Below, piece by piece: positions 45,673 to 58,629 of a stretch of DNA of 64,000 bases. Numbering within the stretch: position 1 is the first letter of the stretch; the number at the start of each line of letters is the position of its first letter. Source of the stretch: Bispira polyomma. Lineage: Eukaryota. The notes under the pieces were generated by a model. The model was not told the DNA's origin. It ran no database searches and saw only the letters and a program-made list of their open reading frames with translations. The stretch lies in NCBI GenBank assembly GCA_965649765.1, contig OZ287749.1, positions 3,658,001 through 3,722,000 of the forward strand, in the 5' to 3' direction. The translations under genes and the position numbers were made by a program.

Positions 45673-47001
45673 TCAAACATAAGGTGGATAACCTCTTTGG
45701 AGGTTGCAAAAGACAAAATTAAAGTAAGGAGGCTGGTTAAGAACCACAGCCTTGAACATTTTTTAAGGTAGTGAATCCGAAACCAGTGGATTTTTTAAGC
45801 AAGCCTGAACATCAGTTCCGAGGTTAAGATGATAAATTACCCCTGCACAACACTTTTTACTTGTTTGACACACTCCTTAAACACTAAAACAAAAATACCA
45901 AATGCAATGGTTCAGTTCCTTGGTTAGGGAGGATGTCTTCGTTTGTTGAGGTAACCGTACAAAAAGAATTACTAGATATATTTAGACATGTTTAAGTAGA
46001 CCTTAACATAAGCATGTGCCCTTAAGGTGCTTTAATTGTAAGGTATTAGCTTTTACCATTATATTCTGTTGTTATTGCTCTCTCATATTTGGTTTACCAA
46101 GAAGTCAATATGGACTCCAGCCAAAATGTTTGGCAAACCTGTAATAATTCCCATGTGAATAAAAAATGATGTTAAGGGTTTTCAGAAAGATCTTTTGTTT
46201 TTGTCTGTGTCCTGTATTTACTTAGAACTGATGCTTCTTCTGTAGACTTGGTAAAGGCTCCAATTTCCTTCTCTCTGCACACACAGAGTGACGCAGTAAT
46301 TGGTTCGCGACATAATTGGGGGTCGATTTTACAAGGAAAGGCTGTCATAGCAAGGAAAGTGAAGGAACATAGCCAAAACTATGATACACAATAACACAAA
46401 CTAACCATTTTGATCAATATTTTTATCCACGAGACACATATATAATGTGCATGAACAGCATGCTTGGGGAAAAGCCACAACAAACATGTGATACACTATT
46501 TTGAGCCTGAAGAACATACTGTTATTGCATTAAAACTTGTACTTATTTTGTGTTTTAAGTTCCTTGTTTATATCTAACAGCTGACATCAAATTGATGGTT
46601 CATGTGAATGACAGAAACTTAGTATTTATCAGACAATGGAAAATTGTTTGACGTTGTGTTACTTTATGAAAGTGCTTAATAAGCAATATATATTGGCATT
46701 CTGTTGTCACTTATTCAAGTTATGCTCTGTATTTACAAATTATAGACATTTGCTTCTACTACTGGCCATGTCACTGAACGTCATAAACGGTATAATGACG
46801 TCATAAAAAATAGCAAAAATTACAACAGAATGGGTTTTGGAAACCTCTTGTATTTTGGTGATTTTCGCCTGTAACATAAAGTGAACACAATTTGCATCAT
46901 ATAGATTTTGAAAAATACACACACATCATGAATTTGTTAATTGAGTGACATGTTATCCAACAACCAGCTTAAGCCATAAACAAGGTTACCTCTTCACTGA
47001 C

Positions 47002-47254
47002 GGGGGCCGCGGTGGCCTAGTGGTTAGCAAGCATTGTGCTTCACAATCACTGGTCTCTCACTTCTGGGTGGCATGAGTTCGACTCCCATCGATGCCTATG
47101 TGGGTGGTAGTTCCTTACTGTGGGCCGCTGGTTTCAGTGCAGAATCTTGATCAACTGTATGCAGTGTTTCCTCCAGCGTTTCCAACTACCCGTCCCAATA
47201 TAACCTACTAAAAGGTACCAGAGTGGACGTTAAATATTCAAATTCAAATTCAAA
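47002..47254 (+). mobile_element. Full-length tRNA-derived SINE with 14-bp TSD
   Basis: A box TGGCCTAGTGG, B box AGTTCGACTC, (ATTCAA)n tail. TSD acctcttcactgac at 46988-47001 and 47255-47268. Confidence 0.92.
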
Positions 47255-47419
47255 ACCTCTTCACTGACCATTGAGTGTTTTCTGCTATAAATGCAGTAAA
47301 AGCCACGGATAAGTTATTTATAAGTTTGGAGACAAATACCACAGGTTGCTGCACACATTCACACCATTCAGCCTACGTTCTCATGTACACTATAACCAAT
47401 GGCCAGAAATGTTATTGAG

Positions 47420-47637
47420 AATTTGATTTTAACCGTCGCTTTCAACAGCTTCGGTCATATCGCGATGGCCATATTTTAATGGTGGAAGAAAGCAGTGCTG
47501 AAACCATTGACCTATGACAAAGTACCAGACAAACTTTTCCCACATGAAGGAATGAACAGGATTCAAACCCACATTGTTGAGAAGAAGCCAGTGATTGTGA
47601 AGCAGGCGCTTCTAACCACTAGGTCACCACAGCCCCT
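47420..47637 (-). mobile_element. tRNA-derived SINE
   Basis: Reverse-complement copy of the 56628 family. Confidence 0.8.
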
Positions 47638-48981
47638 TTCTCCTGCAAAAAAAAATCAATATTTCTAAGCACATATAGATATTTATATATATTCAGGAGC
47701 AAACTCAAGGCACATCTGTTCTGACTGGCTTCTGTTCCCACCTTAGTCAATCTCCCCTACAGATGTCCTTCTAGTCATGACCCGGTGTTTTCCGACTAAT
47801 TATTTGGACAACCAGTGCTTTAGAGGATACTGTATCAATTTGGTGCTATAGCCAATTCATCTATAATATTAACAATACAATTTGACTGTTTGAATGCGTG
47901 AAAAAATCTGGATGTCGCAAATTGCATTCGTTATACATCATAAAGAAATAAAGATAGTTACAGTACAAAAATTCGATGTTGCATATTAGTCGGCCGTCAT
48001 CGCATACATGGGGATGCGGGCTTACGCTTGTTTTACAAGATTGTCAAAAATGTCACTGCTTTTATTTTTTGAGGATTTTAACAAGGCAAAAATCACAAAT
48101 TGCCTACCTTTCATGAAACCTTCATCAATTGGAAAAGGCCTGTTAGTTTTTTGGGGCTTTCAACTTCCATTAATATTTTAACTTGCCAGTGTTTTCTGTG
48201 TCTTCTTATTAACTGAAACTTTTTATGAGAAGTTTTTCTGGTGTTTCCTTTGTGTCATCTAATACGTTACCATGCACACACCCATCAAAAAGAAAAAGGG
48301 TACCGAAAAGGGAAAAATTGGGGAGAGCAAAGATAGATCCTTAGCTAATGAATCCAGAGTATTGAACCCATCAACTAGAACCCTTTATAGCTAAAACACC
48401 TTGCTGACAAAATATGATTTGCAAAAAATGTAAGATGTAATATTTCATTACATGTGCGTATTAATAGCATGAGCTTTTAGGGTCTCCCCTTTGGCTCAAC
48501 TGTTAAGAGTCTGCCTAGTAAGCGGCAGGTCTAGGGATCAAAACCTGTCCAACGTTTATCATGTAACATAGAAATCAACATTTTTTGACTATTGTGTTGG
48601 ACATTTTAACAGATATAACTAGAGGACGTGCCGAAACCTGGTTTATTCCAATTTCTGGTCTAAACTGGTTTTTAACGTCACAAACAAGATGCTTTACATG
48701 TGAAAATGTCAATACAAACTTTGAACCTTTGAAATAGAACTGTTAGTTAATATAGAATACACATATTGTTGAGAAATAAGTGATCTTAATGGGCGTCGGC
48801 AATCAGCTGATGTACGGCGACAATTGACAATTTTTATGTTTTTGCTACCAGGAACGAAACAAATAGTCTTGCATTGCTTACAAAGAAATCAATGAAACCA
48901 ATCAATTTGCCATCGGCTGATCGTCTCAGAAAATTGCCTGCATGAAAACATTCAGTTTAAAATGCCCACTTATTTTTCCAG

Positions 48982-49139: not shown

Positions 49140-49500
49140 ATATCCAAAAAGGGTAGGTCCATGGGCAGCCAAATGGATGTTACCAAAAAGCATCCACCAG
49201 GGAAGAAAAGTTTTCAGATGGCTTCTGAAATCAGGGATTGTATCCTGTAATTTGACAGTCTGTGGGAGCTTCTTTCATTCAACAGGAGCCTCGACAGCAA
49301 AGCAGGACCTGCCGATTTATCGATTTGGTCGGGTTGAGGAAACAGAGCGGTGGTTTCCCCGGGTAAGACTGCTAGGCTTAATGAGTGAGGATTAATAAGG
49401 AGGTTCGTTGAGTTTGATAGCTTCGAACACAGGAAGCTTGTATTAAGAAAAGAATACGCTTAGTAGCCAGTAAAGTTTGTATATGATGACACACGGCTAA
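49140..49500 (-). mobile_element. L2-like LINE 3' fragment, split by the DIRS (continues at about 55658-55730)
   Basis: Reverse strand aligns to the L2 at 59620-60000 (LHWL.., GR..FAV.AP..W..LP, F...LKT.L motifs). Confidence 0.8.
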
Positions 49501-49518
49501 TTTTATAGCGAAAATTGC

Positions 49519-49710
49519 CCTTACCATTTCCTAACAATAGCTTACGTGTTGGAGCCGTCCAATTCACTGGCCAACGAAGATAAACGTTTTATGCTACCCT
49601 AAGCATAACCAGTGAATTTAAGGTCTGTGTAGTGGACAATGGTCAGTCCCCCCCTTAATAATAAGTCACGTGGGTAGCCAATAGGCGGTAACCTTCATCT
49701 TTTTTTGTTG
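49519..49710 (+). repeat. DIRS left inverted terminal repeat (shared part)
   Basis: Reverse complement of 55423-55615 with two differences seen (C7 vs C8 run, one T/A). Contains GTCACGTG and CCAAT. Confidence 0.95.
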
Positions 49711-49770
49711 GCCGTCATTGTGTATGGACGTACTTTGGAAAATTTTGGAAATATTTTATACTTTGGAATT

Positions 49771-51582
49771 ATGGCTCAAGTAGAAGTTAGTAAAAAGGGG
49801 CAAAGAAGAAGCGTTTATTGTGGTCACTATATGGCAGATTCTGATTTACACAAATACTGTTTGAAGTGTAGAGAGTCTTCTAAGGGTGAGGATTCGTGTG
49901 TCACGGGAACTTCTGCTTGTCAAATATGCGAAATTTCCGAGGAAACGAAGCGTAGTACGAGATCAAAGAAATCTAAAACTAAGAAGGAGATCTCAGCTTC
50001 TTTATCAGTAGCCCCATCGAATCAGCTACCTACAGCTTCAGAGGTTATTGACGACTCCTTGTTGGATGAAGAAGACGCGGTTGCAAGAGCTCGTTCTTTG
50101 TCCATCCCAGGCCCGTCTTCTACTGAACAAAAACTGAATTTAATACTCATGCAAATCTCAGACTTCTCTACCAGACTCAGATCTGTGGAGAATCTGAAGG
50201 ATGTAGCGAGTAATGTCACTAGCAATGGGGTGGATCAGAGTATAACTGCTGACCACGGTTTAACCGTTGATAAGGAGACGAATGTTGTCAAGGAAACGTC
50301 TCGGGGAGATTCTAAATCTCAAAGGCTTAGTTCTGGCTTGTCTACCCGTTCTTCTCGCCCCGCAAACTCCACAGCTAGTCTGTCAGAATTTTCTACGACT
50401 ACTGAGGCAGTTCCAGACAGTTTTTTCTTCAGGAAAAGGAGGCATTCTCCTTCATCAGAGGGTGAACTATCAGATGGTACTGAGAGTCAGGAGAAGGACA
50501 GAGATCAGGAGAGTTCGGATAAAAGACCAAAGTATTTAGACACTATAGACACGTTGAAGAAATGGCTAAATTTAGAGGTTGACAATGTAGACCCTTTAGT
50601 ACCTCCTTCAGTGTTTTCTACCAGAAACCTAGACAAAAGAGTGTCACAAGCCTCTTTGGCCTTGCCGCCGGCTACTGGAATTGTTGACTTGTGGAAGTAC
50701 AAGGAATGTACTGCATCTGGATCTTCCACATCTGACAAACAAACTTCTCGACAACATGCTCCTTTATCTAAGGCACAATTTCTACCATTTGCGAGGCCGA
50801 ATATGAAATGGTACCAGTTGTCTCCACAGCCTTTTTCAGTGTCAGCCCCCAGAGTTCAGGATGGTTTTAAAAATATTGCTACTCTCCCATACCAACCCCC
50901 TACTACTGTATCTGCTCCACTTAAGAGTTACCTGCTCTGGGAAACAGTTAACAGGGAGAATCTTCAGATTCTGAATCATATCTTTTGGTTCAAAAACGCT
51001 GTGGAGAAGGCTTCTGCTGAGATGGGAGTTGAATTGGAAAAGATTAAGTCATCGGAGTCTCAAGAAGACATTGTTCAGAGCTTGGATTACCTTCAAAACT
51101 GTATTCACTTACAAAACTCTGTAATGGCTTGTATGGGCAAGTCATTGGACGATGTACTGGATTCGACCATGACTTTAGCTTCAAACCTACTCTTAAACAG
51201 AAGGGACCATTACCTTAAAATGTGTAACAGGAAGGTAACAGATCAGGACTTAACTGCCTTAAGAAATGCATCGCTCACACAAAAAGAACTATTTTTGCCT
51301 AAAGTTTTAGCTGAGGTAGAGCAGAACTTTATCAAGTGGTCTCAGGTCAGCAGGGAATCAAGAGAACCTGCTTTTAAGAGGCAAAACAGACAAGGTTCTA
51401 CCTCAACAAATTCTGATTCTAGACAGGAATATTATGGAAACAATCACAATAGATATCAGAATGCAGCTTTTAAGTCTAACTCTTTTCGTCCCAACAAAGG
51501 TCAGAATGAGTCGACAAAAAGACAAGGATACCCTACTTCCAGGGGTGCTGCCAGAGGTGGTAGAGGTGGAAGGAGGAAGTGA
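49771..51582 (+). CDS. gag: DIRS ORF1, gag-like (603 aa from the first ATG)
   Basis: Intact ORF. N-terminal Cys/His cluster CGH...DLHKYCLKC...C...CQIC, Ser-rich middle, RGG-rich basic C-terminus. Confidence 0.88.
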   Translation: MAQVEVSKKGQRRSVYCGHYMADSDLHKYCLKCRESSKGEDSCVTGTSACQICEISEETKRSTRSKKSKTKKEISASLSVAPSNQLPTASEVIDDSLLDEEDAVARARSLSIPGPSSTEQKLNLILMQISDFSTRLRSVENLKDVASNVTSNGVDQSITADHGLTVDKETNVVKETSRGDSKSQRLSSGLSTRSSRPANSTASLSEFSTTTEAVPDSFFFRKRRHSPSSEGELSDGTESQEKDRDQESSDKRPKYLDTIDTLKKWLNLEVDNVDPLVPPSVFSTRNLDKRVSQASLALPPATGIVDLWKYKECTASGSSTSDKQTSRQHAPLSKAQFLPFARPNMKWYQLSPQPFSVSAPRVQDGFKNIATLPYQPPTTVSAPLKSYLLWETVNRENLQILNHIFWFKNAVEKASAEMGVELEKIKSSESQEDIVQSLDYLQNCIHLQNSVMACMGKSLDDVLDSTMTLASNLLLNRRDHYLKMCNRKVTDQDLTALRNASLTQKELFLPKVLAEVEQNFIKWSQVSRESREPAFKRQNRQGSTSTNSDSRQEYYGNNHNRYQNAAFKSNSFRPNKGQNESTKRQGYPTSRGAARGGRGGRRK

Positions 51583-53644
51583 CTTGCTGAAGGTAAGACC
51601 CATAATTCCTGGAAGTCGTCTCAAAGGCTTCTGGCAAGTATGGGCAGATTTAAAAGCTCATCCGAGAATTGTCCGGATTCTGAAGGAAGGATATTGCCTG
51701 CCTTTCAAAAATTTGCCTCCTCTGACAAATTTTCCTTTAATAAAAAGCTATTACACAAATTCGCTGAAGCAAGCTGTTCTCGAAGAGGCTGTGCTTCAGA
51801 TGCTTCAAAAGCGGGCAATATCCCCGGTTCAGAAACCGAACTCTCTGGGTTTCTACAGTCGGCTTTTTCTAGTTCCCAAACCGGAAGCGAAATGGCGACC
51901 AGTGATCGATTTGAGTATGGTAAACAAATTTCTCATCGTTCCTACTTTCAAAATGGAAACTGCAGAGGTAATTCGTGCATCGTTACAAAAAGGCGAATGG
52001 GTAGCAAGCATAGATCTCACAGATGCTTACTTCCATGTACCAATTCATCAAAAATCTCAAAAATTCCTGCGTTTCAATGTAGGCGACAAGTCCTACCAGT
52101 TCACTGCACTTCCCTTCGGTATCGCTTCGGCTCCTCTCGAGTTCACTCGGATTGTAAGGGAAGTAAAACTCATTGCTTTATCCAGAGGTATTCGAATTCA
52201 CCAGTACATCGACGACTGGTTACTTCGATCAAAGACAAGAGAAGCTTGCTCTCAAGATATGCTCAGCTTGCTTCAGCTTATTCGGTCTCTAGGTTGGATA
52301 GTCAACCTCAAAAAGTCAGATTTGAATCCAACGCAACAGACAGATTTCTTAGGCTATCGATTCGATCTTCAAAGAGGGCTCGTTTTTCCGACCCAAAAGA
52401 AGATTCAAAAGTTAATTCAATCGGCAGGTTCCCTTTGCGATTGTCGGTTCACAACACCAAGGAAGCTCATGTCCCTCATAGGGGTCATGGCTTCTTTGGA
52501 AAAGATGGTACCACTGGGCAGGATTCACATGAGACCTTTTCAGTGGTTCCTCAGGTCGAGTTGGCGATTTCCCCAATCTCTAGACATCTAAATTGCGGTC
52601 GATCAAATACTCAAACATCACCTTCAGTGGTGGTTGAGTCTAGACAACCTCACAAAGGGTTCTCCTTTGCATCCTCTAGAACACAATGTCCTTCTATTCA
52701 CGGATGCATCGGAGAAAGGCTGGGGTGCCCACCTCAAAGACTTAAAAGCCTGGGGGGTTTGGCAGCCTTCAGAAAGAGGTTTGCATATCAATATTTTAGA
52801 GCTAAAGGCTGTGTTTTTGGCTCTAAAGTATTTTCAAAAAGAAGTTATGGGGCATATGGTCCTCATATCTTCCGACAACTCAACAGTCGTGTCGTACCTC
52901 AACAAGCAAGGGGGTACTCACTCTCTAGAGTTGTGTGTCCTGACCTGGAGGATTATGGCTTGGGCAAATGCCAGAGGAATCCAAATCAGGGCAAAACACA
53001 TTCCAGGGAGTCTGAATGTTATAGCAGACTCTCTGTCCAGGGTGGACAAGACCATTCAGACCGAGTGGTCTTTACATCCTCAAGTGTTCAGAAGGATTTG
53101 TCAAACTTGGTACACCCCAATGGTGGACATGTTTGCGACAAATCTAAACAGGAAGCTTCCAATGTACATTTCCCCTGTCCCAGACAATCAGGCCTGGGAA
53201 ATCGATGCATTGAGCATATCCTGGGAGGCTCTGGACGGCTATGCCTTTGGTCCAGTGGCAATCATCCCAAAGTTGGTACAAAAGATGGTCACCTACAGGT
53301 GCAGCATGATTGTGATAGCACCAGGGTGGCCAGGGATGTCGTGGTTTTGGGACCTGGTCGATCTGTCGACCAGACCTCCACTCCGACTTCCCCTGTGGCC
53401 AAAGTTGTTAAAGCAGCCATTCAGGAACAGATTCCATCAGAATCTGGAATTTCTGAATCTGCATGTGTGGCACCTGGATTCCAGATTCAAGAAACCAGGG
53501 GATTCTCTCAGGAGGTGGCAGACAGAATTAAGGCACCTCAGAGAGCATCCTCAAGGAAGGTCTATGAATCAAGGTGGTCCATTTTTCAGAAATGGTGCAG
53601 AGAGAGTAAGGTGGACTTCTCAAAGCCTTCTATCTCTACCATAG
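51434..53644 (+). pseudogene. pol: DIRS RT-RNase H-methyltransferase ORF, split by one in-frame TAA (52589-52591)
   Basis: ORFs 51434-52591 and 52634-53644 share a frame. RT motifs: IDLTDAYFH, LPFG, YIDD. RNase H: FTDAS, HINILEL, SDN, ADSLSR. MT-like: VDMFAT...YAFGP...IAPGWP. Confidence 0.92.
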
Positions 53645-54540
53645 CTGATTTTCTCATTTACCTGTTTAGAGAAAAAGATCTCAAACCTTCTACAATAGCT
53701 GGCTATAGAACTGCTATTGCAGATGCTTTGGGTTCATCAGGGGAAGCTGTGTCCAAAAGTCTAGACTTGAATAGACTTTTGGCCAGTTTCCATAGAGACA
53801 AACCAGCAGCTAATCGGTCAATTCCTAGTTGGGATCTGTCTCTTGTATTACTTACTCTCACTAAGGCTCCCTTTGAACCCTTAGGTAAGGCCTCTTTGAA
53901 ACTCTTGACCTTTAAGACGGTTTTTCTTATGGCCTTAGCCTCAGGAAGGAGAAGGAGTGAAATCCATTCTTGGACTTTTAACTCCTTCAGTAGGAAAGAT
54001 GACTGGTCAGAGGTGACTTTTTGCCCATCTCCAGCCTTTTTGGCTAAGAATCAGCTGGCTTCAGATGGTCCTTTGACTATACAGCCAGTGGTGATTCCAG
54101 CTTTGAAACCTACTCTAGATCCTTCATTAATTGAGGATAAGTCACTATGCCCTGTTAGATCTCTCAGATACTACCTTGACAGGACTAAGGGTTTGAGGAA
54201 AGGTAAGAACCTTCTGTTCATAGCAATTAAGGAAGGTTTTACTAAGGATATCTCTAGGGTGACTGTATCCTCTTGGATTAAACAGACTGTGATTCTCGCT
54301 TATCAAGTATCCGATAAGGAGACTCAACAAGTTACACAGGTAAAGGCCCATGATGTTAGGTCTATGGCGGCTTCTATGGCCTTTAGAGGCGGAGTGGCTC
54401 TAGATGAGATTTTGTCATCTTGTTACTGGAGATCTCACTCGACCTTTACAAATTTTTATCTTAAGGATGTGTGCTGGCACAATGGGGACATTATCAAGAT
54501 AGGTCCTGTTGTAGCGGCTCAGCATATTGTAAATCTTTAA
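51640..54540 (+). CDS. DIRS tyrosine recombinase ORF with long N-terminal region overlapping RT/RH/MT
   Basis: C-terminal ~340 aa: integrase N-terminal-like region (YESRWSIFQKWC...TIAGYRTAI) and catalytic motifs ASGRRRSE, LAKN, HDVR, W and FTNFYL. Confidence 0.93.
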   Translation: MGRFKSSSENCPDSEGRILPAFQKFASSDKFSFNKKLLHKFAEASCSRRGCASDASKAGNIPGSETELSGFLQSAFSSSQTGSEMATSDRFEYGKQISHRSYFQNGNCRGNSCIVTKRRMGSKHRSHRCLLPCTNSSKISKIPAFQCRRQVLPVHCTSLRYRFGSSRVHSDCKGSKTHCFIQRYSNSPVHRRLVTSIKDKRSLLSRYAQLASAYSVSRLDSQPQKVRFESNATDRFLRLSIRSSKRARFSDPKEDSKVNSIGRFPLRLSVHNTKEAHVPHRGHGFFGKDGTTGQDSHETFSVVPQVELAISPISRHLNCGRSNTQTSPSVVVESRQPHKGFSFASSRTQCPSIHGCIGERLGCPPQRLKSLGGLAAFRKRFAYQYFRAKGCVFGSKVFSKRSYGAYGPHIFRQLNSRVVPQQARGYSLSRVVCPDLEDYGLGKCQRNPNQGKTHSRESECYSRLSVQGGQDHSDRVVFTSSSVQKDLSNLVHPNGGHVCDKSKQEASNVHFPCPRQSGLGNRCIEHILGGSGRLCLWSSGNHPKVGTKDGHLQVQHDCDSTRVARDVVVLGPGRSVDQTSTPTSPVAKVVKAAIQEQIPSESGISESACVAPGFQIQETRGFSQEVADRIKAPQRASSRKVYESRWSIFQKWCRESKVDFSKPSISTIADFLIYLFREKDLKPSTIAGYRTAIADALGSSGEAVSKSLDLNRLLASFHRDKPAANRSIPSWDLSLVLLTLTKAPFEPLGKASLKLLTFKTVFLMALASGRRRSEIHSWTFNSFSRKDDWSEVTFCPSPAFLAKNQLASDGPLTIQPVVIPALKPTLDPSLIEDKSLCPVRSLRYYLDRTKGLRKGKNLLFIAIKEGFTKDISRVTVSSWIKQTVILAYQVSDKETQQVTQVKAHDVRSMAASMAFRGGVALDEILSSCYWRSHSTFTNFYLKDVCWHNGDIIKIGPVVAAQHIVNL

Positions 54541-54548
54541 GTAAGTCT

Positions 54549-54838
54549 AGACTTATTCTGGGTACATTTAGTTCAAGAATACGTCTTTCATATGTGGTCA
54601 TTGTAAAGCTGTCTGAAATAAGTGCTTTTTCATATGATATTTGGGAATATAGACTTATTCTGTGTGCAAATGAATTTTCAAGAATACGTTCTTTGATATA
54701 TAGTCATAGGGAAATTTCAGGAATAGTTTGTTTTCATATGATTTTGTGAGTGTAAACCTGTTCTCTGATCAAGAATATGTTTCTCTGATATGTGGTCATT
54801 GTAAAATTTTCTGCAATATGTGGTTTTTCATATGACTT
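54549..54838 (+). repeat. Three diverged ~102-bp tandem repeats in the DIRS 3' region
   Basis: Recurrent agacttattctg...tcaagaatacgt...gtcat...tttcatatga, starting near 54549, 54651 and 54754. Confidence 0.75.
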
Positions 54839-55264
54839 ATGTTGTTTTTCTTCTGTTTTTAGATGGTTAGATGTCCTCCCTGTAGATACTGTACAAAGGT
54901 TGATTGGTTGTATATTGTACATTTGGATTGGACAATTTATTGAATGTGCATAAATTGAAGATGCATTTGTCTGGAGTGCATAATTTGCTGATGCATTTTG
55001 TTGATGGATTTTGGAGATGCACTGACTGCTTTGAAGTGCATAGACTTGAAGGTGCACCTAGTATTACACAGGCATTCAGGAAGTTGTTAAGGTTGGTGCC
55101 ATACAATTTTCCTGTTTTTTGCTAATTATGATAGTCATTACTTTAACTAAATAGTTTTTCTATCTTAATTCAGTATTATATTATTATTATGTCACTAGGA
55201 ATTACCAGTGAATTTTGCAGTCTGTGTTATGAATACTTTCCCACCTTCCGACATGGCTGTATTC

Positions 55265-55367
55265 AGCTATTGTTAGGAAATGGTAAGGGCAATTTTCGCT
55301 ATAAAATTGCCAAATTTAAAAATTAATTTTAAATTTTATTAGATAATACCTTACCATTTCCTAACAA
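55265..55367. repeat. DIRS internal complementary region (ICR)
   Basis: First half is the reverse complement of the element's left end (aattttatagcgaaaattgcccttaccatttcctaacaatagct). Second half is the reverse complement of the right end. The halves join at about 55307. Confidence 0.95.
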
Positions 55368-55422
55368 GGAAAGTCCCTCCCTACCTTCCCCGCAAGTTAA
55401 GGATTCATTTAAGTCTTTCTTG

Positions 55423-55657
55423 CAACAAAAAATGATGAAGGTTACCGCCTATTGGCTACCCACGTGACTTATTATTAAGGGGGGGGACTGACCATTGTCC
55501 ACTACACAGACCTTAAATTCACTGGTTATGCTTAGGGTAGCATAAAACGTTTATCTTCGTTGGCCAGTGAATTGGACGGCTCCAACACGTAAGCTATTGT
55601 TAGGAAATGGTAAGGTATTATCTAATAAAATTTAAAATTAATTTTTAAATTTGGCAA
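55423..55657 (-). repeat. DIRS right inverted terminal repeat plus 3' extension
   Basis: 55423-55615 mirrors the left ITR. 55616-55657 is the AT-rich extension mirrored in the ICR. Confidence 0.95.
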
Positions 55658-56069
55658 ATTTGTCAAACTTGTACACAATACAGCAGAGGACGTTATTTGA
55701 CTCTTTGGAACCTCGTTATATTCACCTTACTAATACTGTAGATTAAGGAATTGCAATAGTCTAGTATACAGTATACTGGGGCATTGTGGGTAGTTCTGTG
55801 ACCTTGACCCCCAAATTAGTTTATTGTTTTATTTATTTATTATAGTGACATTAATGAGGTTTTTAAAATTATTTAATTTTTCATCTCCATCTGGAAAATA
55901 TGCAAAGTTTGACCAATATAGCAAATTGTATACAGCTTTTTACATTAGTTTTGTTATGGATGAAAGCACATGATTGGTTGTTAGTTGTTTAGTTACTGTT
56001 GAAGTGTGTAACTTGTGCCACTGACTGCTTTATGTTTTTATATGTGATGTCCATATAGATATATATAAT

Positions 56070-56320
56070 ATCTTTATTACCCCATTTAAAGGATTTGATA
56101 AGTGACCTTGTTGATATCAATATATAAGTATATGTACAGATCTTTATTTCCCCATTTAAAGGATTTGATAAGTGACCTTGTTGGTAACAATATATAAGTA
56201 TGTATACAGATCTTTATTTTCTCATTTAAAGGATTTAATAAGTGACCTTGTTGCTATAAATAAATAGATACAGATATTGATCCCTATTTCCTCCGTTTAA
56301 ATTATTTGATAAGCAACTTT
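56070..56320. repeat. 70-bp tandem repeat x~3.5
   Basis: atctttatt..ccatttaaaggatttgataagtgaccttgttg at 56070, 56140, 56210 and about 56280. Confidence 0.9.
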
Positions 56321-56627
56321 GTGCATTACTGTGAATGGGGTTTGGAAACCTCCCCCCAAGACCTTTACACAAAATGCATTACATCACACAGAATCAATTT
56401 TAGTGATTACACATAAAGTAAACACAATTTACATCATTCAGATTTTGAAAAGGACTTTTGCATGAATATTTTCTAAAGCGGAACAAATACCCAACAAATT
56501 GGATATCGCCTTTAAAACATCTCTTACTTCTGTAATTTCTACCTGTTTCTTAAGGGTTAAGATAAATTCTTGCATAACCCTAGCAATTTAAGAGATATAC
56601 TATGTATTCCTTTTCAAGTAACATACT

Positions 56628-56850
56628 GGGACCACTGTGGCCTAGTGGTTTAAGCATCTGTTTCTCAATCACTGGTCTCTTATCAATGTGGGTTTGAATC
56701 CTGTTTGTTCCCTCTTGTTGGAAAGTTTGTTAGTTACTTGCCATATGTTGGTGGTTTACAGTGCTTCAAAACTGGCTTCTTTCACCATTGAATATGATAT
56801 GACCTAAGTTGTTCAAAGCTTCGTGAAAACCCAAAAAAATTCAAATCAAA
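56628..56850 (+). mobile_element. tRNA-derived SINE (related subfamily)
   Basis: A/B boxes, ggaaagtttg..agttacttgcc core, atatgacctaagttgtt...aaacccaa tail. Confidence 0.8.
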
Positions 56851-58629
56851 GAGCACAGTAATTAATTCACAGTTGTAAAGCAGGTGCTTTGAAGCACTAG
56901 ACCACCACAGCCCCTTCCTGCAGTTTACTTGGCATCGGCTTGTAAGAGGAAACGTCAGATGTAGACTTTCTCCCAGAGTCCAAAATAGTTTGCAGAATAG
57001 AAATCTTGATCAATTGCCATGCTCTTAAAAGCAACGTTAGACCCAAAACTAAAAACAAACTCACCATTTCCAAATAAATAATTTGTAAATAAACCATATA
57101 CTTTGCACCAACACAGTAGGTGTATTTCACAGACGAGAATCTGTTTGATCTGTGCAATTTAGATCACAATCTGGATTCGTTGGATTTGCTAGATTTGTGA
57201 AATGCATAAAGTTGGTTTTTAGATTTAAAATGGCTACCAATTATATAGATTTTAATATTACACATTTAAAATAAGGTACACCTCAAGTTCATTTGATAAT
57301 ATTCAAGTTCATTTTCTGTTCTGAATGTATATTTTGTATATTCGACTGTATAAGTAACTCTGTGGGACTTTCTCTCCATTTTTTGCAAAGAATTGTGGGT
57401 AATCCATTCGATTTGAAACCGCTGAACTACCTCTTTAGCAAGATCAACAGATCACTGATCTGGTATATGATTCAGTGCACACACAACAAAATTCGTTGAT
57501 CTACGAATCTAGATTAAACAGATTGTCTCTGTGACATATGCCTTTCAGTTCAAGGGGTGGATGATATCATTTGAGATATGTCTATTTAAAGGACTACTTA
57601 TATATCACTACCAAATGGTCCCCGCTGGGTTAGTTTTATCACCAATAATTGGTCTTCTGGGTTAAGTGAACATTAAACAGTCATAGCATATTACAGTGAT
57701 TCTCTGCAATACAAGACTAAAAGCTAGACTCTTTCCCCACCGCAGTACAAATGGATTAAATCTGAATCAGTTTGTCAGTTTGGCCCATATCAGTTATACC
57801 TGACACTTTTGCTGTAAGTTATTGTCAACCATTTACAGTAGAATCCCCCTGTATTTAGATATGTGTTGTATTGGAAGAAGTAGATCATACATGGAATATA
57901 TACATTCCATAGCACACACGATAGTATGTGTACATTCAATGACCACTTTTTTAAATGTGTACATTTTAATTATTTATCTCTGTAAGTGTATACATTCAAC
58001 ATCTAAAACTGAAAACTAAATTGTACAGACAGAAACAGATGATTACTTGCACAAAAGAGTATTGACACGGAAACAGGCGAAAATGGGCAGAAACACAGGA
58101 TTGCTAGAATGGAAGTAGAAGTTACAGTTGTGATAGGGGAATACTCGGAAATACGGGCGAAAGTTTTGACGTACATTTAAAACATCTCACACAATGGACT
58201 GTAGAAGGCTTTTGAAGGAAGCTGAAGTTCGGGGAAGTTATAGATACGGTTCGCCTTGCTACAAGGCAATGCTCATAACGTCTCTTACCACCTCTCTCCA
58301 TACTATCATAGTACGAATCAAGTGTTAATCTCTATAGGCCACAGAGAAGGCAATTAGTGTGTGTTCTAAATCAGATGCTGACTTGCTGACAAACTAAAGC
58401 CTTCAGCAAGGCTACATACTTAAAGTAAAACCTTTACAAATATCATCACAAGTGAATTGATTCACTGAGGACAGTACACATAAAATGGGTTTTTTTTATC
58501 AAGCCAAATGCAGATGTTTTCCCAAGAGACTTACAAACTTGCTGTAGTGATTAAAGAAAGGAAAGGTTGGGTCTGTTCCTCTGTTGTCTTATATCAACAA
58601 TCGTCATTTAGCGTCCATTGCATGAGAAA

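Follow-up and report, generated by a model that had tools for sequence, protein, structure and literature searches.

A weak gag stop codon as the likely route to recombinase expression in DIRS1-like retrotransposons

In a young DIRS1-like retrotransposon from Bispira polyomma, and in 17 relatives from about ten distant lineages, gag and the tyrosine recombinase (YR) gene share one reading frame that is broken by a single weak stop codon. The recombinase is therefore most likely made by ribosomes that read through this stop and cross the reverse-transcriptase gene in another frame, although no RNA or protein data were available and readthrough itself remains unproven. The element (49499–55661) lies in a window of 64,000 nucleotides (contig OZ287749.1, assembly GCA_965649765.1), the whole stretch of DNA analysed here. 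An earlier note had described the shared frame, its TGA-C stop, the long overlap with pol and a 149-nt overlap between pol and gag, and had proposed expression of the recombinase by readthrough. All of its coordinates hold, and the idea survived every comparative test that the note had named as able to refute it.

The element is bounded by a left inverted terminal repeat (49499–49710, + strand) and a right inverted terminal repeat with its extension (55423–55661, +), where the copies in the genome begin and end, respectively. Two of the inverted-repeat pairs (I1 and I3) give arms of 136 and 63 nt that are 100% and 98% complementary; pairs I1, I3 and I4, which join the left repeat to 55265–55615, are 98–100% complementary. 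An internal complementary region (55265–55367, +) pairs with 49499–49542 (I4, 100%) and with 55597–55661 (I2, 98%), as is characteristic of DIRS1-like elements. The gag gene (49771–51579, +; frame 0) comprises 603 codons and aligns with the gag of divergent families; substitutions shared among copies fall mainly on codon position 3 (16, 10 and 59 for positions 1 to 3). Its frame has stops at 49675, 51580 and 54538 only, so that it is open from 49678 to 54537 except for the TGA at 51580, which is preceded by AAG and followed by C (51580–51583, +). Beyond this stop are 985 open codons, giving a potential readthrough product of 1589 residues, and 19 codons (51583–51639) precede the first ATG of a 966-residue ORF.

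The pol gene is in the +1 frame, which is open from 51320 to 53641; its first ATG, at 51434, accounts for the 149-nt overlap with gag. Over 51581–53641 (+), pol contains a conserved N-terminal motif (GSRLKGFW) from 51611, a reverse transcriptase (about 51872–52363), an RNase H (about 52682–53038) and then a possibly methyltransferase-like region. Pfam searches identified RVT_1 (E = 8.5e-23), RT_RNaseH (9.7e-6) and RVT_3 (1.8e-5), but gave no hit for the C-terminal 200 residues of this frame, a region that is nevertheless conserved among families by tblastn. A feature missed by the earlier note is an in-frame TAA in pol (52589–52591, +) where 21 other copies have a sense codon; contigs of public sequencing runs also differ from the window at 52589. 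This copy cannot make full-length Pol. The recombinase, consisting of a SAM-like N-domain and a catalytic domain, occupies 53500–54540 (+, frame 0) including its TAA stop. A weak recombinase N-domain hit (Phage_int_SAM_5) lies at residues 622–693 of the 966-residue ORF, and the AlphaFold2 model is confident over residues 620–935. Residues R144, K176, H277, R280, W303 and Y313 are invariant in alignment A3, there are 10171 relatives at E ≤ 0.001, and no integrase or protease hit appears in any ORF.

The open frame over pol is not a product of chance. Shuffling of synonymous pol codons, which preserves the protein and its codon usage, gives 38.4 ± 4.4 stops in the frame of gag over 686 codons (minimum of 23 in 2000 shuffles), whereas none is observed; the third frame has 48 stops against 46 expected. 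Across six families, the shuffles predict 26–41 stops (s.d. of about 4) and none is observed in any of them, indicating that the frame is kept stop-free by selection. The encoded spacer (51583–53499, +; 639 codons) is rich in Ser (14.9%), Arg (8.9%) and Gly (8.0%), as the earlier note had remarked, but it is not conserved as a protein. Its pN/pS is 1.66 against a related family (L031), compared with 0.27 for the pol frame and 0.18 for the recombinase, and values of 1.66–1.75 reject protein-level constraint. Only the within-family count hints at fewer changes at pol third positions (37 of 646 sites against 87 of 812); between families, pS in pol equals pS in YR (0.709 against 0.716). The spacer is also predicted to be disordered, with a pLDDT of 25–42 and no secondary structure over residues 1–618 of the 966-residue ORF. 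The 'dual coding' of the earlier note thus means a translated spacer and not a second functional protein, although 640 non-conserved residues are an unusual thing for a functional polyprotein to carry.

The 21 other copies in this genome (95–99% identical) all keep TGA-C and the frame, but are too similar to be informative. We therefore compared 17 divergent elements (YR 37–78% identical), leaving out five degraded or rearranged copies (L038, L046, L058, L059 and L062). In all 18 elements, representing about ten deep lineages in the tree, gag and YR share a frame with exactly one stop between them. A further sequence, P0215, shows the same frame by its coordinates, while P0181 is an uninterrupted gag-to-YR ORF of 1870 residues. 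The gag stop is TGA in 15 elements, TAG in three and TAA in none, while the pol and YR stops of the same elements use the three codons about equally (TAA 14, TAG 12, TGA 10). The stop is followed by C in 14 of 18 elements and preceded by AAA or AAG in 11 of 18. CAA/CAG-TTA or CAA-TCA follows in five elements and CTA, CTT or CTG in seven; the exceptions are TGA-T (two elements, in two lineages) and TAG-G (two elements, in one lineage). Some caution is warranted, since most of the compared copies come from unannotated assemblies and metagenomes and some may be dead, and the C after TGA is also the third base of an Asp codon (GAC) in the pol frame. Frame sharing could, moreover, be an inherited, frozen trait: given pol at +1, the prior chance that YR shares the frame of gag is about one half.

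In one lineage, comprising families L033, L035, L036 and L037, the sequence just after the stop is protein-coding in the frame of gag. The only conserved nucleotide island around the stop in these four families is AAA TGA CAA/CAG TTA C, which fits CARYYA, probably the readthrough context of tobacco mosaic virus. They also encode a block with 13 invariant cysteines in the frame of gag, starting about 50–90 codons after the stop, where TGT/TGC swaps would change the residue in the +1 frame; pN/pS is 0.46 in frame 0 against 1.08 in +1. In two of these families no ATG precedes the block: the first frame-0 ATG lies beyond it in L033 (codon 246) and inside it in L036 (codon 138). The block gave no Pfam or Atlas hit and only a poor AlphaFold2 model from four sequences (pLDDT of 44). 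In the lineage of the window element, pol coding starts about 10 codons after the stop and masks any such signal.

Taken together, these observations lead us to favour, with moderate confidence, a model in which the gag stop is a programmed leaky stop. Most ribosomes would terminate at 51580 and make Gag, while a minority would decode the stop, cross the whole of pol in its alternative frame and reach the recombinase domain, yielding a Gag-spacer-YR polyprotein. Pol would most likely be made by a +1 frameshift at or within a few tens of codons of the same stop. This would explain why the YR frame overlaps pol for its whole length. It is the only way to translate a gene lying downstream of pol from one unspliced RNA. 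The occurrence and frequency of readthrough, the frameshift and the delivery of YR into the particle are inferred, and the tethering of YR to the particle suggested by the earlier note is pure inference. If the model is correct, the 966-residue 'YR protein' called by gene finders would really be the C-terminal part of a Gag fusion, Gag, Pol and YR would all be delivered as Gag fusions, as in retroviruses, and the overlap would be an extreme case of overprinting, with about 2 kb kept open only so that ribosomes can pass.

The long overlap between pol and YR, with the catalytic domain in the non-overlapping 3′ end, is a known feature of DIRS1-like elements (Poulter & Goodwin, 2005; Piednoel et al., 2011, PMC3266345). 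The papers that we could read describe it without giving a mechanism of expression, and none proposes readthrough, although prior mention (for example in Goodwin & Poulter, 2001, or the Poulter reviews) cannot be excluded. New here are the frame shared with gag, the single weak stop that is never TAA, the selected stop-free spacer and, in one lineage, a coding domain after the stop with no ATG before it. Half of the 28 DIRS1-like elements annotated by Piednoel et al. (2011) lack a long overlap and must express YR in another way. As is probably the case in the Gag-Pol readthrough of gammaretroviruses such as murine leukaemia virus (UAG plus a pseudoknot), a structural gene would end in a leaky stop through which a minority of ribosomes extend it into an enzyme. 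One lineage has exactly the hexanucleotide that probably serves in tobacco mosaic virus, and most others have UGA-C (several of them UGA-CUA); UGA-C also seems to serve in alphaviruses. Here, however, the extension does not run into the adjacent enzyme gene but crosses it in a second frame to reach a distal one. A conserved stimulatory RNA structure, which would be needed only for readthrough of the retroviral type, was not found: the local fold of the window has z = −1.35, no consensus structure appears in either of two lineages, and the stem-loop predicted for the TAG-G lineage rests on only two distinct sequences.

Translation of YR independently of gag, from an internal AUG (51640 or later) by leaky scanning, reinitiation, an internal entry site or a subgenomic RNA, with the shared frame a historical accident, seems unlikely but is not excluded. 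The ATG at 51640 is in a good context (A at −3, G at +4) and every family has some frame-0 ATG upstream of the YR domain. However, no ATG position is conserved; the first lies 13–340 codons after the stop, adding up to 1814 codons without a stop, and the 'start' of the 966-residue ORF is a GTG in L031. A recurrent ATG at codon 104 of the window and L031, matched by a Met in the alignment of L035, becomes Val in L033 and L036, and from our reading of the codons it may be a by-product of a Lys-Trp codon pair in pol. An internal start would not require the frame to be stop-free right up to the gag stop, as it is in all 18 elements, and the Cys-rich domain lies before or across the first ATG in L033 and L036. 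Scanning past a 600-codon gag full of AUGs is also implausible.

Production of YR from a spliced RNA that removes pol and joins part of gag to the recombinase appears more doubtful still. A GGTAAG resembling a 5′ splice site lies 12 nt after the stop in the window and in L031, but is absent in L032 and L039. No polypyrimidine-AG acceptor is conserved in the 120 nt before the YR domain, with none in the window, L031 or L033 and one only in L035 and L036. Splicing would not require 640 stop-free codons, yet six families hold them under selection. Contigs from the three sequencing runs that contain the element showed no GT..AG joint over pol, but none of these runs is on record as RNA and the contigs behave like DNA.

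It is similarly improbable that the weak stop serves mainly or only as a +1 frameshift site for Gag-Pol, in the manner of the shifty stops of antizyme or prfB, with the frame-0 ORF entered some other way or kept open for a reason unrelated to making YR. This reading leaves unexplained the stop-free frame 0 and the coding domain after the stop, and it does not compete with readthrough, since both events could use the same pause. Pol is at +1 relative to gag, as it appears to be in Ty1 and Ty3, and a slow stop preceded by AAA or AAG is the likely pause site; this part is inference only. No known slippery heptamer is conserved, and openness of the +1 frame upstream of the pol motif is no greater than the gag protein sequence alone predicts, so that it does not locate the shift. 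A more speculative possibility is that the stop is a three-way recoding node, at which termination gives Gag, a +1 shift gives Gag-Pol and near-cognate decoding gives Gag-spacer-YR, setting the ratio of all three products from one unspliced RNA, with the long overlap existing solely as a translated bridge to the recombinase. In favour of a +1 shift, four elements of three lineages have no ATG in the pol frame upstream of the pol motif, so pol also depends on ribosomes arriving from gag, and the motif starts 3–10 codons after the stop in the lineage of the window. In all 15 elements with a TGA gag stop the pol frame reads Asp directly after the stop, and two of the elements (L040 and L041) share the +1-frame residues D-Y-L/M-S/A-P at this position.

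The segment at 49499-55661 is one copy of a DIRS1-like retrotransposon, with inverted terminal repeats whose long arms are 100% and 98% complementary and an internal complementary region (55265-55367) that pairs with both termini. In the frame of 49771, the only stops between 49675 and 54538 are TGA at 51580 and the final TAA, and this frame holds a 603-codon gag, a TGA followed by C and then 985 open codons. Pfam places RT and RNase H in the +1 frame (51320-53641) and gives a weak recombinase N-domain hit at residues 622-693 of the 966-aa ORF that starts at ATG 51640. The numbers given in an earlier note for the 19-codon linker, the 149-nt ATG-to-stop overlap of pol with gag and the candidate 1589-residue readthrough product were all confirmed, but that note missed an in-frame TAA at 52589-52591 in the pol frame of this otherwise pristine, very young copy. 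The 21 other copies have a sense codon at this position, and the present copy would need Pol supplied in trans if it moved again.

To determine whether the open frame exceeds chance, the synonymous codons of pol were shuffled while keeping its protein sequence and codon usage. Gag's frame should then carry 38.4 ± 4.4 stops over 686 codons in the window and 26-41 in five other families, yet none is observed in any of the six, whereas the third frame has the expected number. Selection on the silent sites of pol therefore keeps this frame open. It is already known that DIRS1-like elements can have a long overlap between the tyrosine recombinase (YR) and pol, with the catalytic domain in the non-overlapping 3′ end (Piednoel et al., 2011; PMC3266345); elements without the long overlap must work differently.

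The genome (1.04 Gb in 75 contigs) holds a very large family, with more than 10 000 first-look candidates for the YR domain. The 21 near-full-length copies that were retrieved are 95-99% identical to that of the window and all keep AAG/AAA TGA C and the shared frame, although at this similarity the agreement says little. Eight copies have acquired stops in the spacer frame and eleven in the pol frame, as expected for decay after insertion, and none has an indel between 51434 and 53641. Substitutions shared by two or more copies follow gag's frame in gag (16, 10 and 59 by codon position) and pol's frame in the overlap (37, 16 and 16). Two copies in this genome (G000:C9:9008459-9009475 and G000:C2:74106724-74107740) have YR-frame open stretches of 1072-1073 codons, longer than the 985 codons that follow the gag stop, and the stop may be lost in them.

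A more informative test came from divergent families. A word search and an exhaustive profile search found many YR ORFs of about 950-1100 residues, with the recombinase at the C-terminal end, down to 37% identity. DNA was obtained for 17 usable elements (designated by L numbers) from two assemblies, one Logan contig, one NCBI assembly and several metagenomes, and a YR tree puts them with the window in about ten deep lineages. In all 18 elements, the frame that carries YR runs back without interruption to one stop, and that stop ends a 340-850-codon gag-like open frame in the same frame (L049 holds only 18 codons upstream, and the gag of L032 and L037 is broken further up). Two more cases agree: P0215 by its gene coordinates and P0181 as an uninterrupted 1870-residue gag-to-YR ORF; either this copy lost the stop or the family has none. 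Five degraded or rearranged copies were set aside. No intact element had gag and YR out of frame or a second stop between them, although frame sharing is partly inherited and some of the compared copies may be inactive.

The gag stop of the 18 elements is TGA in 15, TAG in three and TAA in none, compared with ten TGA, 12 TAG and 14 TAA among the 36 pol and YR stops of the same elements. Counting about ten lineages instead of 18 elements, the gag stops are eight TGA, two TAG and no TAA, and on the above background we estimate the probability of that many TGA to be roughly 1 in 1000. The base after the stop is C in 14 elements, T in two and G in two, and the codon before it is AAA or AAG in 11. 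In the window's lineage the context is AAG TGA CTT/CTG, L039 has AAG TGA CAA TCA and L040, L041 and L048 have TGA CTA. L033, L035, L036 and L037 have AAA TGA CAA/CAG TTA C, and in that lineage this 13-nt block is the only conserved island in otherwise diverged flanks. Stop-CAA-UUA appears to correspond to the readthrough context of tobacco mosaic virus, UGA-C and UGA-CUA are probably the leaky contexts of alphaviruses and metazoans, and adenines just before the stop are likely also to favour readthrough. However, the C is also the third base of an Asp codon in the pol frame, where GAC makes up 58% of Asp codons, so this base alone is weak evidence. No downstream RNA structure is conserved. In the lineage with AAA TAG GG, a hairpin directly after the stop and a longer stem-loop about 30 nt downstream are predicted (L047:1029-1150 and L051:3985-4106; −35.8 kcal/mol consensus, two compensatory pairs), but only two distinct sequences support them.

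The lineage comprising L033, L035, L036 and L037 has 98-156 codons between the stop and the conserved start of pol (VGGRL, +1 frame). Frame 0 there encodes a block of about 77 residues with 13 invariant cysteines (C-x3-CC-x2-C-x2-C ... C-x2-C-x2-C-x5-C-x2-C-x2-C-x2-CC; L033:3767-3997, L035:4118-4345, L036:3678-3911 and L037:3474-3719). The block has no Pfam or Atlas match, its AlphaFold2 model is poor and the window's lineage lacks it. The nucleotide changes are TGT/TGC swaps, which are silent in frame 0 but would exchange Val and Ala in the +1 frame. In the Cys-rich block, pN/pS is 0.46 in frame 0 and 1.08 in frame +1, compared with 0.39 and 1.13, respectively, in the C-terminal half of gag and 1.75 and 0.22 in the N-terminal part of pol. 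The first frame-0 ATG after the stop is at codon 246 in L033 and codon 138 in L036, beyond or inside the Cys-rich block. A conserved protein domain thus lies directly after gag's stop, in gag's frame, and in two of the four families no ATG precedes it; the simplest reading is that ribosomes enter from gag.

Across the elements, the first frame-0 ATG lies 13-340 codons after the stop and its position is not conserved, and the summed 1814 codons between the stop and the first ATG hold no stop. The corresponding '966-aa ORF' of family L031 starts at a GTG chosen by a prokaryote-style gene caller, and the recurrent frame-0 ATG at codon 104, which we read as a by-product of a Lys-Trp codon pair in pol, becomes Val in L033 and L036. 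Independent initiation of YR fits poorly, given the missing conserved ATG, the frame being open right up to the stop and the domain that begins before any ATG. In L042, L044, L047 and L051 the pol frame has no ATG between its upstream stop and the pol motif, and in L051 that frame opens only 22 codons before the gag stop. Pol therefore also seems to depend on ribosomes arriving from gag, through a +1 shift close to the stop. The +1 frame reads Asp directly after every TGA, and L040 and L041 share D-Y-L/M-S/A-P there, but the site of the shift was not located. A shifty-stop +1 frameshift for pol is compatible with readthrough rather than opposed to it.

Between the window and L031, the 985 post-stop codons align without a gap at 71% nucleotide identity. 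Across the overlap, pN/pS is 0.27 in pol's frame and 1.66 in frame 0, whereas in the YR domain frame 0 has 0.18. The spacer is Ser/Arg/Gly-rich and basic, and AlphaFold2, given 29 homologues, assigns a pLDDT of 25-42 and no secondary structure to residues 1-618 but a confident recombinase fold to residues 620-935. The peptide is therefore a bridge that is only kept stop-free, not a second functional protein. Splicing would make such a bridge unnecessary, and no conserved donor or acceptor was found here, although in the absence of RNA data neither splicing nor independent initiation can be dismissed outright. The comparative evidence thus supports the interpretation of the earlier note that the recombinase is made by readthrough of the gag stop; as translation itself has not been shown, we hold this mechanism to be more likely than not, with only moderate confidence. 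Programmed readthrough that crosses pol on a stop-free bridge would explain a known oddity of DIRS1-like elements, and we found no paper proposing readthrough for these elements in a literature search that did not extend to the key reviews.

Summed contig depth over 49690-55660 is about ten times higher over pol, YR and the termini than over gag, which suggests sister subfamilies that share pol and YR but not gag, or many 5′-truncated copies. About 400 nt downstream of the element, at 56070-56300, lie three tandem copies of a 70-nt unit (78-92% identical), and tRNA-like SINE fragments (GGCCTAGTGGTT motif) lie in direct and inverted orientation on both sides of the element, at 47000-47641 and 56625-56919.
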